Source of the DNA: Bugula neritina
Taxonomy: Eukaryota > Animalia > Bryozoa
Direction of reading: 5' to 3'
NCBI GenBank assembly: GCA_964035545.1
Contig: OZ037766.1
Coordinates: 10,592,722 to 10,656,721 of the forward strand
DNA: 64,000 nucleotides
This document shows, piece after piece, positions 46,926 through 57,600 of this stretch. The notes beneath the pieces are model-generated. The model was not told the DNA's origin. It made no database searches and saw nothing but the letters and a program-made list of their open reading frames with translations. The translations under genes and the position numbers were made by a program. Position 1 is the first letter of the stretch; each line of letters begins with the position of its first letter.

Positions 46926-48420
46926 TCAACGTTTTAGTCCAAAAAAGTTTTTAAATCTCTCAAAATAAGTTGGGACTGCAAGTATGTTGCTATTTAGTGC
47001 AAATATTTTGGACATAGTGCTATGGACAACTGGGATTTGTCTTCTTTCCATTCTTCTGCTGACCTCTCTAAATATCTCCATTATATCACTCGGATGGTTT
47101 GGTTGGTCTGCTGTGCTGAATAGGGCTTGAGTGAAGAACCCCCTGAGAGATACCTGACCTTGCAGCGTAGAGCTGATGATAGCAGTTGAAGAATCACCAG
47201 CTGGTATTTCAAAGGAATCAGGAGAAGGGGGTGATTTTGTCGACAATAATGGCCTTGTAGTTTTAGCATCTATAGTAAAAATGTAAATTGTTTAAACTGT
47301 TGTATTATGGCTTTGTTGTCATACAGGCTTTAAGAGAAAAAACTATGTAAAGCTTTCAGATAAAAAGCTAATGCTTTATGTAGTATATGTACATACTGTT
47401 AGTCAATCCCTCTCTTTACGACTCAACCTAGTTCTATGCACAATAAAACTTATTTACACAATACTACACAAACTAGCTTAAAATCCACTACACAGCAATA
47501 TAAAATTACTCAATGACTCAACCAAAATCAGTGTGTTGCATGCTTTTTACTTTTGCTGTAAACTCATATTGAGAATTTAGGAAACAAGCTGTTGCATTAT
47601 TAAAAAGCTGATTTTCAACATGAACGATACTAAGCTCAGCAGTTTTGTAGTTTATTTAGTCACTGTTGAAAACTTGAGCATCTATGAGGCCTGAGATTGA
47701 TAGTATCCCAGCAGCTGGGCTCTGAATTATCTCATAGGTACCTGTTTGGGGATGTAGACTTTCACTTCCTGCATCTGAGCATTCTCCAGTACTCTGGCAA
47801 CACTGCAGTATCAAAACCTAAAGAAGCCACTCAATATGCTAGGTTCGAGTTTCATTAATTCTGGAACACCTATTTATTTACAGTCCTCAAATATAAGGTA
47901 CACAATTGTTGACATTCTACATTTAATCTATGCTCTGCTGAAAACAATCTTCCATAAGTATATGAGATGAGCAACAGTAAAAATTAAATTCATAATTATA
48001 ATGTTATAATAGCAGAATAAATACTTACTACTTTCTTATATGTGAAAGGATTAAACTCTTTTTTAGAATAGATTCAACTATGATTTACAGGGCAAGAATT
48101 CGCCTATTTGTGCAACAGTTGGAAACTAAAAAAATATTTTTTGCATCTTTACACCTAGTAAGTTTTGTAGGAGCTTAGAGCTAAAATTCCAAAGATTATT
48201 TAAGAAACCTCAAACAATCTAAAATATATATAAACGTGTGGTCACATTAGATGAATTTGTCTTGTCTGGACCCAAATGCGTAAAAATCTATTTTGGGAAC
48301 AACCTTTTACACACGGTGCGTTGGGTATGTATACACACACATACAACACGCACACACACAACACGCACACACACAACACGCACACACACAACACGCACAC
48401 ACACACCACACACCACACAC

Positions 48421-48485
<65 letters not shown>

Positions 48486-49923
48486 CAGTACGAATGCAAT
48501 CTACAACTGTTTTATTGAAATGAGCCAACATTCTTACCTTGGGTACATTCTCCAGCATCGCATTGTAGCAGATAGCATTGATGATACTCTGTACGGGAAC
48601 TTGCCTCAAATTTCTATCATATATGTAGCCCTTCTCTCCATGGGACATAATTACTAATATCAAACCAGAAATATGGCCATCATGTTTAATACCCTGCTCT
48701 AATTTAGCTAGCATAGTGCGCTCGCTGAAGTCAACATGGATATGGGAGCTGATATTGTACTGTTCCAATGCTTTAACCACGTTACACTTTTCAGCTTCAG
48801 CTCCGTCCCGTTTCCATTTCTTGTAATCAAGAAATCGATTGTAAAAGATGAAGGCTTTGGGTCGCTTGTAAAATACACGCCAGTAATGGGTTTCCACCAT
48901 AGGCAATAGCTTTGTAAGTTGGCGACGTTTAGCATATTTTATAGCTTTTAATTGTTCATTGTCCTCTATTCTAGTCAGCGCCACATCTTGTTCTTGAGAA
49001 AATTCAAGAAGTGTCCTGGCAATCTCTACAGAGTTCACCATACAAGCATAGTGTAATGCTGTTTTCCCTGTTATACATTTAAATGATAGCAACTTCCAAT
49101 GATGGAGCTTATTTTCAACAGCTAAGAGTAGCTTCTCAACAATATCATGGCGGTTTCCTTGAGCAGCTAAATGAAGTAGTGTCTTACCATCACAGGTCTT
49201 GAGGTGGAAAACCTCTTCATAATCCTGAGTGCTTTTTACAATATCAATTAGATGCTCATATTGAGACATCATGTTATCGGGAGTCAAGCGATTTGTGTAA
49301 CAGCGACCTTGTTGCTTTCTTGATGACCTTGAACTCCTGATTGAGGTATTGTCATAAGAAGAGGGTATTACTTCTTCTTTTGATTTGGAAACCCTTTTGG
49401 TTTGTCTTAAAACACTCTTTTTCTTAGTCAATTCTTCAGCATCGCTTTTGCTAATGTAAGAATTTATCAGCTTTTTTATATCTCCAGAAACAGTCAACTC
49501 TAATACATTAAGTTGATGATTGTCTTTGACTGAGATGAGCTCAAGCCGTTCAATTACTGACAATTCACTCAAGTAAAATTCAATAACGTCTTTTTCACCA
49601 CTAATTGCAGCAGTATGCAAGGCAGTACGGCCCTGAGAGTCTCGTAACTGCAGGTATTTTAACTTATCTGTTTGATCAATCTGATGCAAGATGGCTTGAG
49701 CAACTGGTAGTCTAGTATTTGATTCGTTGGTGGTGTGGTTTAGATACGAACTCATGTCTCGGAGTGTATAGTGTAAGGGATACTGTCCACTACGACTCTG
49801 CTTAGCTAATAGTTTAGAACAATCTTCTGAGTTTAGTATAGAAGCAAGTACCTTTTCCACTGCTCTAATGTTGCAGTTTCGTATTGCTTGTATTAATCTT
49901 GAATGCTCCGATCTATAGTCCAT
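46926..49923 (-). CDS. Ankyrin-repeat-containing caspase (ANK clusters + p20 + p10); exons 49923-48538, 47817-47742, 47269-46926 (start ATG 49923 or 50001)
   Basis: ANK motifs GRTALHTAAISG, GKTLLHLAAQG, GKTALHYACMVN; caspase p20 PKAFIFYN..F....KRDGAEAE...LVIMSHG...LENVPK/VLILQCCQS; p10 EIP..D....SSTLQGQVSLRGFFTQAL...DIMEIFREV...QIPVVHSTMSK. Exons join in frame (phase 0, then phase 1). Confidence 0.88.
48334..48486 (+). repeat. Compound (CA)n microsatellite with CAACACGCACACACA-type interrupted units, in caspase intron 1
   Basis: Direct observation of ~150 bp of CA/CAC repeats followed by a short (TA)n. Confidence 0.97.
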
Positions 49924-50420
49924 ATTGTGGGTAAGTATATTTTGTTGTATGCAGATTGTATAATGAGAAGTTACTGCTAGTTTCGGTAGCAGCCAATGCA
50001 TGAGTGAAACTTCAAGTATGTTTGATTATTCTTGATACCCTGGCCAATCAAATTCAGAATACAATTTTTATTTCGTCCTGTTGTCAATGTAATTAATGTG
50101 TGACGTTAGTAACAAGCAATAATCTGATCAAAGGTACAAAGTTATTTCCTTGTTACTACATGATTAATAATAAACTATTTCAAAGGCTACCAGTGATGGA
50201 GAGTGAAAACTTATCTTATCCGATAAGCGAGTTGCGTAACAATGCCTTTTTTACAGCCAATAGTTTTAAACTTTGACTTTAGTCTTGCTGCATGTAGGAA
50301 CCATCAAAGACTATAGCACGCTGTTTTAATATACCAGATCAATAAACATAATATTTTTGATTTTTGTCAGCTCATAGAATTGATTCACTATTCTGCCTGT
50401 TTAAACTATATATAAGCAGG

Positions 50421-51655: not shown

Positions 51656-54600
51656 TTACTCAGCATTGTCTTCTTTAGCAGGTGCTTCCTCTTTTTCTGG
51701 TGCAGCTGGTTCTGCTGGTGCAGCTGGTTCTGCTGGTGGAGCAGCGTCAGCTGGTGCTGCAGTTTCTGTTGATTCAGAAGTGTCATTAGCAGTAGCAGGG
51801 CCTCCGTCCGCAACTTCAGTTTCGGCAGCAGCTGCCTCTGCAGCTGGTACTTCCGTTGTGTCTTTCGCATCTTCAGCTGACGGTAATGTTTTATCAGCAC
51901 CAGCACTTCCTGCATCATCAGCAGCAGTGGTAGTTTCTGTAGATTCTGGTTGTTCTGTTGAAATGGCTGCAGGCGGCTCCGTCACCTCATCTACTGCAGC
52001 TTTAGCAGATTCTGTCACCTCTTCACTAGCAGGAGCTTCTTCTGATGTGCTTGCAAGCGCTTCTTGTGTGTCTGCAGGCACTTCGGATGTGTCTGCAGGT
52101 GCTTCTTGTGTGTCTGCAGGTGCTTCTGCTGCTGTGGCAGGTGCTTCTGCTGCTGTGGCAGGTGCTTCTGCTGCTGTGGCAGGTGCTTCTGCTGCTGTGG
52201 CAGGTGCTTCTGCTGTGCTAGCAGGTGCTTCTTGCGTGTCTGCAGGAGCTTCTGATGTGTTAACACGTGCTTCTGCTGCTGTGACAGGTGCATCTGATGT
52301 GCTTGCAGCTTGCTCTTCTGGTACTGATACTTCTTCGGAATCTGACTTTTGCCCTGCTGATTTTCGAGCTGCCATGTCTTGTCGTGTTTTAAATCCCTTA
52401 AACCCTGCTTGTATTTTAATGGCTGCAGCTTCGACATCGGGATCTGCCAAGTCAATGTCTACTTCCTCACTTTTAGGAGTTGCTGGTTTTTCATCTGCTG
52501 CTGTCTCTGTGGTTGCTGATGGATCTGTTGATGTTGTGTCAGTTATTTCTTGTTTTGTAGCCTCTGAGCCTGCTATTGAAGATTTTGCTGAGCCCTGTAA
52601 AAAAGTGTGCAAATAAACATATATTTCAAAAAATTAGTTAGGTTTTTAGGTCTAATAACCCATCAAAATAGTAGTGGCAGGTTAAATATTGTCACACTCT
52701 GTACATTTATACTGATACACCAATCAAGCTGTTAAGTGTTATCCATACTGTTAGTATTGACTAGCAAATAATTCTGTCAACAAAGTTAAAGCACAACAAA
52801 TCATTCAAGTTGGTGAAGAGGTATTGTATACACCTGTAAAACAGAAAAAGAACATTTCCAAATACAATACTGTGCTAGTAATATAATGTAGACATATATT
52901 ACAAGGATTTGCAATTTACTTTTACTATACAACAAGCTGGAAATAGTTTTCAGGTGTAATAAGCGATCAATCAATTCTTACTACATTGTAGATTATATAC
53001 ATGACAAATTTAGCAAATCAAATTTGTTGGGCTATTTTGAAATGGTAACATTAAAAAGCTGAGCACAAAAACAATTTGCAGGAAATGAAATTTTTATAGA
53101 AATAAAAATAAATTTTCACGAGCAATGCCAAGCATTGCCAAATACAAGACTTGACAATGTTACTGCCACATGTGGACAACAATTATATATATACTTGTTA
53201 CTTTCTTTAGTGATCCCCCTGAAATACAATATACCAGCATATAACCTGACATAATTGGTTCATAACTCAAGCTTTTTTAGGGCTTGCCTCCCTCATCAGC
53301 ATAGCAAAAAGGGCCATGGCCAACACCTTTGCTAAGATATATCTGAAGGTGTGCTAATTCAATACAGAATGTTAAAGACACTTCAGTAAAGATACAGTCC
53401 TAGGTCTGTTTGAAAGCGTTTGATGGTAAAAGAATACATAAAATAATATACTAAGACAGCTGAGCCACTAATAAAAAATGCAGACATGTAAAATTGATAG
53501 AGCGTGACATTTTATAAAAGAATATTGCTGAAATCTTACATAGCATATTCTATACATTTTATTTGCCTACATTAATATTATTATATTGTGTTGATATATA
53601 CATGTTAATAGAAACCGAAATTCTGTGAAACAATCAGAAAATATAAAGTGCATAAATTGTTCTAGTTGCTAGTTAGAGGCAGCATGCATGTATGCTTTTA
53701 TTTTTACTCTAATTAAAATGCTGTCAGAGTGGAAATTTATATGGATTTGTAGCTGTACATTTAAGGTAACCGCAGAGCTAATTTCAAAGTTAGTTCTTAA
53801 ATGAAGTTTAGAAATAAATAAAATGTAAATTACCAGTTATAAATATTAACATTAACATCTAGTACTTTTTTATTTAGTTTCAATATGGGAGAAAACTGCT
53901 GAAACTAATTTTGATAAAAATGATAGGAGCCAACTTTATTTTTATGGTCTTATAAAAGCAAACATGGCAGAAAAGTATAGGGTGCGAGACAGCATTCACA
54001 GCTACAAAACCTTTTTTGTTTTTAGCTCTCGTCGAGTTTTCATTCCTTTAAACCCAGCTTGTATTTTTAAGGCTGCAGTTTCAACCTCAGGGTCATTGAG
54101 ATCTATATCAACTTCTTCTACTGAAGGTGCAACTGCTTTTGAAGCAATTACTGCTCCTTCATCTTTTACAGATTGTTCCTTAGGTAAAAGAATATTTATT
54201 CTATTGCTCATAATATGTTATGGGAAATTCAAAATAATAAAATTAAACAAAATGTCTACTCATCAATAATTTATTTTCTTATAAGTTATAACATATAGGG
54301 ATATCTTATCTAACCTCTCGCTTTTCTTCTGCCACCGCTGGGTTTGCTTCTGTTTCAACTTCGTTTACTTCATGTAGATCTATCTCTTTTTCTTCACTCA
54401 TCATTTCTTGGAACATTTCTACTTGTTTTGTACTTGAGTCTAGTTCTACTGGTTTTAGTACAACAAATGACTGTGCTTTCATGGTAGATTTCTCTTCTGG
54501 TATGTCTACTATCTCTCGTTGATTTTCTTCCTGTAAATCAAAATCTGCACTGGCTATAGAGAGGGCTATAACAGAAGCTTTTTACAGAATATGCACTGTG

Positions 54601-57600
54601 CCAAAAAAATATTATTGCATCCAATAAAGAATAGAAATTAAAAGAAAAGGCAGAAACTCAAAGCAAACGAAGATTTGCATACTCAAAGAAGTTAGAGAGA
54701 TGCATATTATAAAAATTAAGTTAAAAAATAAGATAATTGAAAAACGTGAATAAAAAATCTGTTTTTGCATTTTCTATCAGACCTTCATTTTTCGAACACG
54801 CTGTCTAGCTTGCATCCCTTTAAACCCAGCTTGTATCTTTGTCGCCGCTTTTTCCGATTCTATTTCACTAACGCTTGTATAAAATCCTACTCTAGAATGT
54901 TCCTCTGCTCTAGATAGAGATTCTTTTGTGTCATTCAAAAGAGGGTCTTGTTTTGACGTCTGATTTTAGAATTTTAGAAAAGCAAACAAAACAGAAGCAG
55001 TTGATATGTTAGTGCTCAGCTAGCTCAGTGAGGGTCACAAAACCATTCTAATCAGAAATGGCTCAATGTATTTTTATTGGCATAAAAGTGACTGTGATTT
55101 TAAGTATATTCAAATTCTAATGTTTTATGGCCATCTGTAGTATAAAATCAGCTCATGCATGTGGGGGCAAATTTCAATTTTTTATTATGTCAGTATATTT
55201 GGTATAGATACATAATGCAATCAATGCAAATTTGGAAACAATTATGAAGTAATGTGGAAAAATACACTGCGCCATTGCATTATTGAGGGGACTAAGCTAT
55301 TGAACAAATATTTGATGTGCAGCACTAGCATGAACAGTAGGTGCTCTCACACTCACACTACTATAACACAAGGGGGTAAAGCCACGCCTTCAAAGTTATC
55401 AATTAGAGCTTAATTAAGTACAATACTGTTAATTTGGCATTGTGCTAAATGCCTTACAAAAATAACTAATACAGTTTTACATCTTTTTCTTAAACAAGAA
55501 GCATGTAGTTTAGAATTAGTTGATGAAAAAACATAGTGTTTTGTTTGTGGCAACCAAAGATCAAATACAAATTTTGAAACACCTTGACTATGCATAAAAA
55601 TAAATTTGAATAATAGCACTACACAGCGTCTTTAGATTTCATTAGATTAGAATTAAAAGAAGTTGAAAACAATAAAACACAATAAATATATCTCACAAAT
55701 AATGTATTGTGTTTTATGATTTTTATAGTTTTTTGGTTCAAATTGTTGCATATTCTAAAGTAAGACCAGTGCTTTAACTTTTAAATAAAGTGTTTAAATA
55801 ATTGAATAAGGTGTTTAAATAAACATAAGCTTATTGCTTTCATTTCAGCTTATTGGGAAATCTTACCAATTGCTTTCGAGTTTGATAACCCTTAAAACTA
55901 GCTTGGATTTTTAGTGCTGCTGCTTCTACATCGGCATCATTCAAATCAATGTCAATCTCCTCTTTTTCTGCTCCTGACTGTTGATTGGCTGGAAGCTCTG
56001 AGCTACACAAGAGAAATATTAGTCATAGAGTTTACATTCAGCTGCCGTATTGTCTAGCTCTGCAGCTGTTTTACTTGCCTTGCTGTGGGTTTATAGTCAC
56101 CATCTCTGTGAGAACCCCTAAGGCCTAAAGGGTTTTTTTAAGCAAGCTAAGGACTTTTTCACAAACATTGAAAGGAGGCAATTGTGACTGAATGTCCTTT
56201 CTAGCATCTTTGTTGAGACTCGAATCGCATGACCTCGTGTTTACTAAGCCAACGCTCTAACTCTTAGACCACAGCTACATGCTTACTGTATTACATATTA
56301 TGGATGATAAATTCTAGTACATGGCTATTGCAAATCCCAACAACTATCATTTATCAACTTTATACAGTTGCAGAAAATTTAAATGCTTATCTTTGTTTAT
56401 AACTTGCTAAGGTAAGTAAATTATATTTCCCTGCAGGTTACTCTGCTGTATAATACTTTTTTTCTATATATGAGTATTTTTCCAAGATTTGACTTTTAAA
56501 AATCTATAATATCAACTTCTAAACTCACCTGTCTTCAGCAGAAGGGCTTTCCTTTCGACCTTCGTGACCTCTGAAACCTGCTTGTATTTTTGTGGCTGCT
56601 TTTTCTTCTCTTATGACTTCGACCTCCTGTTTGGCAGCATGCTGACGGAATTTTGTCTGTATTGCCAGAGCAGCATCTTGTTGTGTTGGATCACTGGGGT
56701 CAATCTCTGGTTGCTGACCGATATTATAACATAATATAAACATATGTTGACAGATGTTATATCATAATATAAGCAGATGTTGACAGATATTATAACATAA
56801 TATAAGCAGATGTTGACAGATATTATAACATAATATAAGCAGATGTTGACAAATATTATAACATAACATAAGCACATGTTGACAGATATTATAACATAAC
56901 ATAAGCACATGTTGACAGATATTATAACATAATATAAGCAGATGTTGACAGATATTATAACATAATATAAGCAGATGTTGACAGATATTATAACATAATA
57001 TAAGCATATATTGACAGATATTATAACATAATATAAGCATATGTTGACAGATGTTATAACATAATATAAGCACATGTTGACAGATATTATAACATAACAT
57101 AAGCATATGTTGACAGATATTATAACATAATATAAGCAGATGTTGACAGATATTATAACATAATATAAGCATATGTTGACAGATGTTATAACATAATATA
57201 AGCATATGTTGACAGATATTATAACATAATATAAGCATATATTGACAGATATTATAACATAATATAAGCATATATTGACAGATATTATAACATAATATAA
57301 GATAGTGTCTTGAACATATTTTACAAGATAAGCTAAAAAGTCTTTACTCCAAACTTCAACACTTACGGAGAATGCTTTATTGTTGTAAAATCGATCTTCC
57401 ATTTTGGCGCCATGCTCTGCTGGATCTATCCCAGATTCTAATAATTGATAGGATAGATATAATGTGTGCTGTCTTTGATAATATAATACTTTATATGCTT
57501 GATGTGAGGCTAACTATGACAATTCCTACTTAGTTTAAACTAAAATTCACAAGTATGTATAAATTGTTGTGTCAAACTATTTAGAAATTATTTTATACAA

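Follow-up and report, generated by a model that had tools for sequence, protein, structure and literature searches.

A predicted ankyrin-prodomain caspase of the bryozoan Bugula neritina and its clade

An intact ankyrin–caspase gene

The stretch of DNA analysed here (the window; 64,000 nucleotides, positions 10,592,722–10,656,721 of contig OZ037766.1) comes from the AT-rich genome of Bugula neritina (assembly tzBugNeri2.1), and carries on its minus strand a gene in which ankyrin repeats precede a caspase domain. As read from the DNA, the predicted gene consists of three exons (49923–48538, 47817–47742, and 47269–46929) with a coding length of 1803 nt, or 601 codons, giving a predicted protein of ~601 residues. 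We are confident that the gene and its ankyrin–caspase architecture are real, and hold with moderate confidence the statement as a whole, namely that the locus is one intact gene for an Asp-specific initiator-type caspase, recruited via its ankyrin prodomain and belonging to the clade described below. The ankyrin repeats form the prodomain of a single polypeptide with the large (p20) and small (p10) caspase subunits, which is the architecture of the ANK caspases; this assignment is based on the presence of the ankyrin repeats and the His-bearing p20 part in one open reading frame (ORF), the two ankyrin modules modeled by AlphaFold2, and a full-length homologue in Watersipora.

Here and in five relatives, a single ORF without interruption spans the ankyrin repeats and the His-bearing p20 part. 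The homologue, XP_067937378.1 (P0015), comes from Watersipora subatra; this RefSeq protein of 648 residues combines ankyrin repeats with a complete caspase domain, and exons 1, 2, and 3 of the window align to it in order at residues 20–512, 513–519, and 552–628, respectively. Exon 2 corresponds to its PK-VLVLQSC segment (pentapeptide, QSCLT), and exon 3 shares 41% identity with its residues 552–628. Watersipora also has a second copy, 89% identical to this protein.

The gene was further compared with the older ‘B. neritina’ assembly GCA_010799875.2, which is treated as a sibling species because it is only ~89% identical at the locus and B. neritina is a complex of cryptic species (PMC11480708). 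The locus is syntenic in the sibling species, lying between a RhoGEF gene and eIF3d, and the splice sites of both introns and the reading frames are kept. Exons 2 and 3 align with 0 gap columns, and 72 of the 76 bases of exon 2 are identical, with QCCQS unchanged; intron 1 has 65.9% identical columns and 188 gap columns out of 771, and intron 2 has 11 gap columns. The ratio of nonsynonymous to synonymous substitution rates (dN/dS) is 0.25 for ankyrin module 1, 0.39 for the linker, the highest value, 0.24 for ankyrin module 2, 0.17 for the p20 part, and 0.20 for exons 2 and 3 (codon counts pooled, with the split codon left out). Every part of the gene is under purifying selection (dN/dS, 0.17–0.39). 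As a separate observation, intron 2 is more conserved between the two species (Jukes–Cantor distance, 0.084) than the synonymous sites of its flanking exons (dS, ~0.23).

Caspase domain and active site

The Pfam profile Peptidase_C14 matches exon 1 at profile positions 11–121 (E-value, 1.7e-5; 25.0 bits, cut-off 21.4) and exon 3 at positions 155–231 (E-value, 3.9e-8; 33.7 bits), and the full-length Watersipora homologue at positions 15–230 (64 bits). The gene has both the p20 and p10 parts of a caspase domain (MEROPS C14A/PF00656). A first-pass annotation of the window had proposed that the catalytic His (in MSHG) and Cys are retained, that residues of an Asp-type S1 pocket are present (Arg of KRDG, Gln of QCCQS, and Arg of VSLR), and that the pentapeptide QCCQS departs from QACxG. 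All three proposals are borne out by an alignment of the clade with canonical caspases, into which the exons of the window were entered as separate fragments. The His (codon 48642–48640) falls in the invariant His column, and the third residue of QCCQS (47805–47791), a Cys (codon 47799–47797), in the invariant Cys column. The clade and canonical caspases alike show no variation in the His, the following Gly, the PK pair, or the Gln and Cys of the pentapeptide, and the Arg of KRDG (48810–48808), the Gln of QCCQS, and the Arg of VSLRG (47144–47142) align with the canonical S1 residues. The pentapeptides of the clade (QCCQS, QSCLT, QRCRS, QACQM, QACQV, QSCQG, QCCQG, and QCCQD) have only the Gln and Cys fixed. 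QCCRG occurs in other caspases of the match list, and QACQR, whose fifth residue is not Gly, in a dipteran caspase-8. We regard QCCQS as unusual, yet neither alarming nor isolated, because relatives have QCCQG, QCCQD, QCCRG, or QSCLT and the dipteran caspase-8 has QACQR. In canonical caspases, the S1 Arg is followed by a GSW segment (loop L3); the whole clade lacks it, and has a short L4 loop.

The Asp of the candidate inter-subunit cleavage site SPD|S (codon 47219–47217), also pointed out in the first-pass annotation, stands six residues upstream of IP(A)GD, at which the small subunit begins; the sibling species (PPD|S) and Watersipora (SCD|S) both retain it. The p20 profile matches Protein Data Bank (PDB) chains of caspase-3, -6, and -7 and DrICE with E-values down to 2e-15, with the Arg and SHG aligned; no PDB chain was matched by phmmer with exon 3 alone. 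A model of the Watersipora caspase domain (mean predicted local distance difference test score (pLDDT), 76.8; predicted template modeling score (pTM), 0.76) is confident apart from the linker, and has CED-3, caspase-8, caspase-3, and caspase-11 as its best PDB matches (probability, 1.00). The Foldseek search with this model did not tell initiators from effectors.

Ankyrin prodomain and linker

Exon 1 matches Pfam Ank/Ank_2 in two stretches (E-value, 2.6e-18), one of them an Ank_2 match to module 2 at residues 247–334 of the 564-residue ORF. The AlphaFold2 model of residues 1–338, built with 11 homologues, shows two confident helical-repeat blocks (residues 1–165 and 215–338); its pTM of 0.48 is as expected, because the two modules are placed independently. 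Two ankyrin clusters separated by a linker, as read initially from the translation, are therefore seen in both analyses, around a disordered segment of residues 168–211. No CARD or DED was found in the exon-wise Pfam scan, in which the sole death-fold match, Dark_CARD, scored 13.9 bits (cut-off, 25) and lies inside ankyrin module 1; the view that ankyrin repeats stand in place of CARD or DED holds accordingly. Module 1 and the start of module 2 are conserved across the clade, and between bryozoan genera the ankyrin modules share 30–35% identity, with many invariant positions. Module 2 has two repeats in Bugula, three in Watersipora and several metagenome relatives, and six in another relative.

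The linker had been described as basic, Ser-rich, and similar to a nuclear localization signal. It is indeed basic and Ser-rich in Bugula, but this character is not conserved beyond that genus: every more distant relative has an acidic segment here. A nuclear localization signal as a feature of the family was rejected, since the linker is acidic outside Bugula.

Relatives, clade, and paralogues

A profile search with the p20 part against 1.84 billion representatives gave 1935 matches at E ≤ 0.001, and a tree was built from the best 147, most of them ORFs called on short contigs and cut off in the intron after PK. The window gene groups with the Watersipora protein and metagenome or Logan ORFs in a clade of 12 rows (SH-aLRT, 97), nested in a group of 87 rows (SH-aLRT, 99) from which 60 canonical caspases are set apart. 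The named members of the 12-row clade are bryozoans only (Bugula and Watersipora). Shared derived features of the clade are the ankyrin repeats and His-bearing p20 part in one exon, a phase-0 intron right after PK, a Q-x-C-x-x pentapeptide with only the Gln and Cys fixed, the loss of GSW, and the short L4 loop. A relative in the wider clade, P0089 (386 residues; QCCQD), is intronless on ~10-kb contigs (L058–L060) from several metagenomes, and on the basis of this protein the clade may reach beyond the named bryozoans.

Among 50 longer, lower-ranked matches that were scanned, 15 carried Dredd_N/Dredd_2nd domains (insect caspase-8), two DED, one CARD, and three ankyrin repeats. A word-index search with the p20 part alone matched only two near-orthologues. 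The search with full-length P0015 returned only bryozoan and metagenome relatives and generic ankyrin proteins, and no flatworm ANK caspases; likewise, no flatworm was found among the best 150 p20-profile matches looked up, and neither flatworms nor Alitta in the word-index searches. Ank and Peptidase_C14 also occur together in a jellyfish model (Sanderia) and in an ESM Atlas cluster labeled mostly Arthropoda.

In the B. neritina genome, the clade profile finds three genes with E-values of 1e-40 or better, the next match being at 9e-7. The paralogue count that the first-pass annotation proposed to make is thus a three-gene clade in which the window gene itself is single-copy. The two paralogues, L008 (C3:22.65 Mb) and L043 (C9:8.255 Mb), have the three-exon layout, intron positions, and phases of the window gene: the last ankyrin repeat and p20 to PK lie in one exon, followed by a short exon of phase 0/1 (61 and 64 bp) with the pentapeptides QACQM and QACQV, respectively, and the third exon of L008 begins by completing an Asp codon. 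Intron 1 of L008 (L008:1080-1400) also contains two copies of a tRNA-like sequence resembling a short interspersed nuclear element.

Proposed function and alternative interpretations

That the enzyme is active and Asp-specific is inferred from the sequence, as are its route of activation and the role of the ankyrin modules. In this reading, the ankyrin prodomain would take the place of DED or CARD in docking the enzyme onto a partner or platform, whereby the caspase would be activated through induced proximity and would cleave itself at conserved Asp residues in the ~38-residue inter-subunit linker. From the trimmed L3 and L4 loops, P2–P4 preferences unlike those of caspase-3 or caspase-8 are predicted.

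Several points weigh against this interpretation. By sequence, the p20 profile matches effector caspases best in the PDB, not initiators, so that the assignment as an initiator is based on the length of the prodomain and of the linker, together with weak phylogenetic proximity. The loss of GSW from L3 removes a Trp that shapes the S2 and S4 pockets in known caspases, and, combined with QCCQS, possibly points to reduced or altered activity. No spliced product of the Bugula gene itself was found in the protein collections searched. Moreover, exon 1 of GCA_010799875.2 is interrupted by a 1-nt frameshift, near HGE(K/R)G and directly past the catalytic His, and the annotation of this assembly splits the locus into a 440-residue ankyrin gene and a 146-residue Peptidase_C14 gene (L036:10001-12910). 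The frameshift is probably an assembly error, because an independent metagenome contig from the sibling lineage (JGI, L037) is intact at that site.

Among the alternatives, a cFLIP-like regulator, weak or dead as a protease, that pairs with or scaffolds other caspases would suit a non-canonical pentapeptide drifting at positions 2, 4, and 5 across the clade, and the loss of the L3 GSW with a short L4 throughout it. Dead caspase homologues, however, usually lose catalytic and S1 residues, whereas the His, the oxyanion Gly, the Gln, the Cys, and both S1 Arg are kept under purifying selection in every member examined, and we consider such a regulator unlikely.

Also unlikely is a one-chain sensor-protease, as suggested in the first-pass annotation: the ankyrin repeats would directly bind a pathogen, damage, or non-self ligand and thereby release or dimerize the caspase. 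Ankyrin repeats are recognition modules, and bacteria and fungi use caspase-like proteases with repeats as sensors; in addition, ankyrin-array and LRR-Roc-COR ORFs that precede caspase exons form large families in the genome, and the repeat number of module 2 varies among relatives. Yet the gene is single-copy and syntenic, and both ankyrin modules have dN/dS of ~0.25, with no arms-race-like excess over p20, unlike a diversifying receptor. They are also conserved between bryozoan genera (30–35% identity, with many invariant positions), and ~5–6 repeats offer only a small surface. Direct sensing is weakly disfavored because of the single copy, the synteny, and the purifying selection on the ankyrin modules.

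Finally, an annotation artefact, with an ankyrin gene next to a short caspase fragment, or a decaying pseudogene would match the two-gene annotation (440 and 146 residues) and the frameshift near HGE(K/R)G in GCA_010799875.2, but is very improbable, given that the ankyrin and His-bearing p20 parts share one ORF, so that a split leaves the caspase without its His, that the metagenome contig is intact at the frameshift site, that all exons are open with dN/dS of 0.2, and that RefSeq joins the parts in Watersipora.

Gene model and coordinates

The ORF containing exon 1 has 564 codons (50001..48307) and encodes the ankyrin repeats and the first half of the caspase domain. It is inflated to this length because a compound (GT)n/(GTGTGCGTGTT)n microsatellite ((GT/CA)n; ~48340-48480) in intron 1 lets the frame run on for 76 further codons; exon 1 itself ends in ...NVPK at 48538, in phase 0 and followed by the donor GTAAGA. 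The start at 50001 taken initially has to be given up for the conserved Met at 49923, as the sibling species and the metagenome orthologue both begin with MDYR. On the other hand, the pentapeptide was correctly located in a 76-bp exon outside the ORF track: the exon at 47817..47742 has AG and GT boundaries, and reads VLILQCCQSTGECSDAGSESLHPQT with one base left over. Exon 3 first completes an Asp codon, carries the RQIP motif, and ends in FKNFFGLKR, with the stop codon at 46928–46926. The features are summarized in Table 1.

Table 1. Positions of the predicted ankyrin–caspase gene and its parts in the window
Feature	Positions	Strand	Description and basis
Exon 1, coding	48538..49923	-	462 codons; ankyrin prodomain and N-terminal two thirds of large subunit; ORF and Pfam
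Ankyrin module 1	49429..49923	-	Residues ~1–165, ~3 repeats; Pfam Ank_4/Ank_2, AlphaFold2 pLDDT 75–94
Disordered basic Ser-rich linker	49291..49422	-	Residues ~168–211, contains KKKSVLRQTKRVSKSK; pLDDT <50
Ankyrin module 2	48910..49281	-	Residues ~215–338, 2 repeats and capping helix pair; pLDDT 83–95
Large-subunit (p20) part in exon 1	48538..48909	-	Pfam Peptidase_C14; S1 Arg 48810–48808; His 48642–48640
Intron 1	47818..48537	-	Sequence; holds compound microsatellite
Exon 2, 76 bp	47742..47817	-	AG acceptor/GT donor; phase 0 in, phase 1 out; VLILQCCQS...
Intron 2	47270..47741	-	GT...AG
Exon 3 and stop	46926..47269	-	Inter-subunit linker and small subunit (p10); Pfam Peptidase_C14

Elsewhere in the window, two minus-strand ORFs were noted (56611–57402 and 51656–52612), one of tandem YYVIISVNICL units and the other Ala/Glu/Pro-rich with an IQ-like motif (AAIKIQAGFKGFKTRQ).

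Other caspases of the same genome

The B. neritina genome contains at least 179 Peptidase_C14 exon matches; its caspases probably outnumber by far the 45 reported for amphioxus (PMC3196919). A large number of them are encoded directly downstream of, and in the same orientation as, huge ankyrin ORFs or ORFs with leucine-rich repeats (LRR), Roc, and COR. One ankyrin array consists of four tandem ankyrin ORFs of 700–1000 residues (C2:30505500-30552900; L038–L041) with canonical multi-exon caspase exons downstream, and further examples are found at C2:32915000-32924900 (L042) and C7:5536000-5545900 (L044). The comparison with the window gene rests on gene structure and profile E-values. As in the window gene, ankyrin repeats lie upstream of a same-strand caspase. 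In contrast, the one ankyrin-array caspase that was read fully (L040, whose sister loci have near-identical p20 exons) has an intron-split p20, no intron after PK, the pentapeptide QSCAG, and a canonical G-T-W after the S1 Arg; these array caspases, with G[ST]W intact, are missed by the clade profile. The window gene is judged to be a lineage separate from them, because gene structure and L3 differ and the clade profile finds three genes only.

A single caspase with a ROC prodomain is known in an annelid (PMC11463336). At several loci of the B. neritina genome, ORFs with LRR and Roc (and COR) lie 1–3 kb upstream of same-strand caspase exons (C7:7657000-7664900, L046; C6:4986000-4993900, L049; C1:3542000-3549900, L051; C3:4506000-4515900, L045), which suggests caspases with ROCO prodomains. 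L051 reads KPKLIIFHACSG, with a His at the usual place of the pentapeptide Gln.

Significance

As a rule, caspases are activated via death-fold prodomains (CARD and DED). ANK caspases, a recently named exception without biochemistry, are tied to parasitic flatworms by the one study of them that we found (PMC11463336). A conserved, single-copy ANK caspase in free-living bryozoans means that this layout is not linked to parasitism. Being compact, with ~600 residues and ~5–6 repeats, the protein is suited to asking whether an ankyrin prodomain serves recruitment, auto-inhibition, or sensing, and the active-site surroundings of the clade, with Q-x-C as the only fixed part of the pentapeptide and with L3 and L4 trimmed, offer a test of which features are needed for Asp-specific cleavage. 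Should the ankyrin repeats turn out, against our expectation, to be a receptor for a foreign, damaged-self, or allogeneic molecule, a colonial animal would have a switch that senses and kills within one protein. More modestly, the bryozoan clade possibly shares ancestry with the flatworm ANK caspases, in which case ANK caspases would be an old spiralian initiator type and not a parasite innovation.

Comparison with known systems

Outside the clade, the p20 profile has its nearest named relatives in caspase-8 and Dredd (15 of the 50 scanned matches). They share the segment PK-[VIL]L[IL][LM]-Q-x-C-Q with the window gene (PKVLILQSCQG in a beetle and PKVLILQCCQS here), have a long prodomain, and tolerate a fifth pentapeptide residue other than Gly (QACQR in Teleopsis). 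They differ in possessing a DED or Dredd_N domain, neither of which is present in the window gene, and Dredd-type proteins keep GSWFIQ after the S1 Arg, which is lost in the bryozoan clade; a well-supported branch of the tree parts them from this clade. More generally, the death-fold initiators (caspase-8/10, Dredd, caspase-9, and caspase-2) are defined by a DED or CARD prodomain, which the window gene does not have.

Ankyrin repeats and caspase-type proteases are brought together in two other settings. The adaptor Caiap is a separate protein without a protease domain. This vertebrate inflammasome adaptor, composed of CARD and ankyrin repeats, ties such repeats to caspase regulation (PMC5662874). 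Bacterial and fungal C14/CHAT proteases with ANK, TPR, WD40, or LRR repeats join a clan-CD protease and repeats in one chain, as here, and bacterial Ank + Peptidase_C14 clusters lie near the window protein in the ESM Atlas. However, these fusions are not true caspases (C14A), and their repeats are usually C-terminal, often with an NTPase, so that the likeness is one of design, not of descent.

The closest architecture is that of the ANK caspases, first noted in Schistosoma and named in 2024 (Genome Biol Evol), when they were found in one annelid, Alitta virens, and in every parasitic flatworm examined (PMC11463336). They were placed as sister to DED caspases, suggested to be initiators with an unknown activator, and called parasitic-flatworm-specific; the description was bioinformatic only, and no bryozoan was sampled (PMC11463336). 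As in the window gene, an ankyrin prodomain replaces CARD or DED before p20 and p10, and the animals that carry it are lophotrochozoans. The likeness drawn here is one of architecture; the text of that study describes neither pentapeptides nor loops for comparison (PMC11463336). We found no description of bryozoan caspases in the literature searched, and an ANK caspase appears not to have been reported before for bryozoans. The combination of ankyrin repeats with a caspase domain is already known, and the Bugula gene is a member from a previously unsampled phylum, with derived features of its own.

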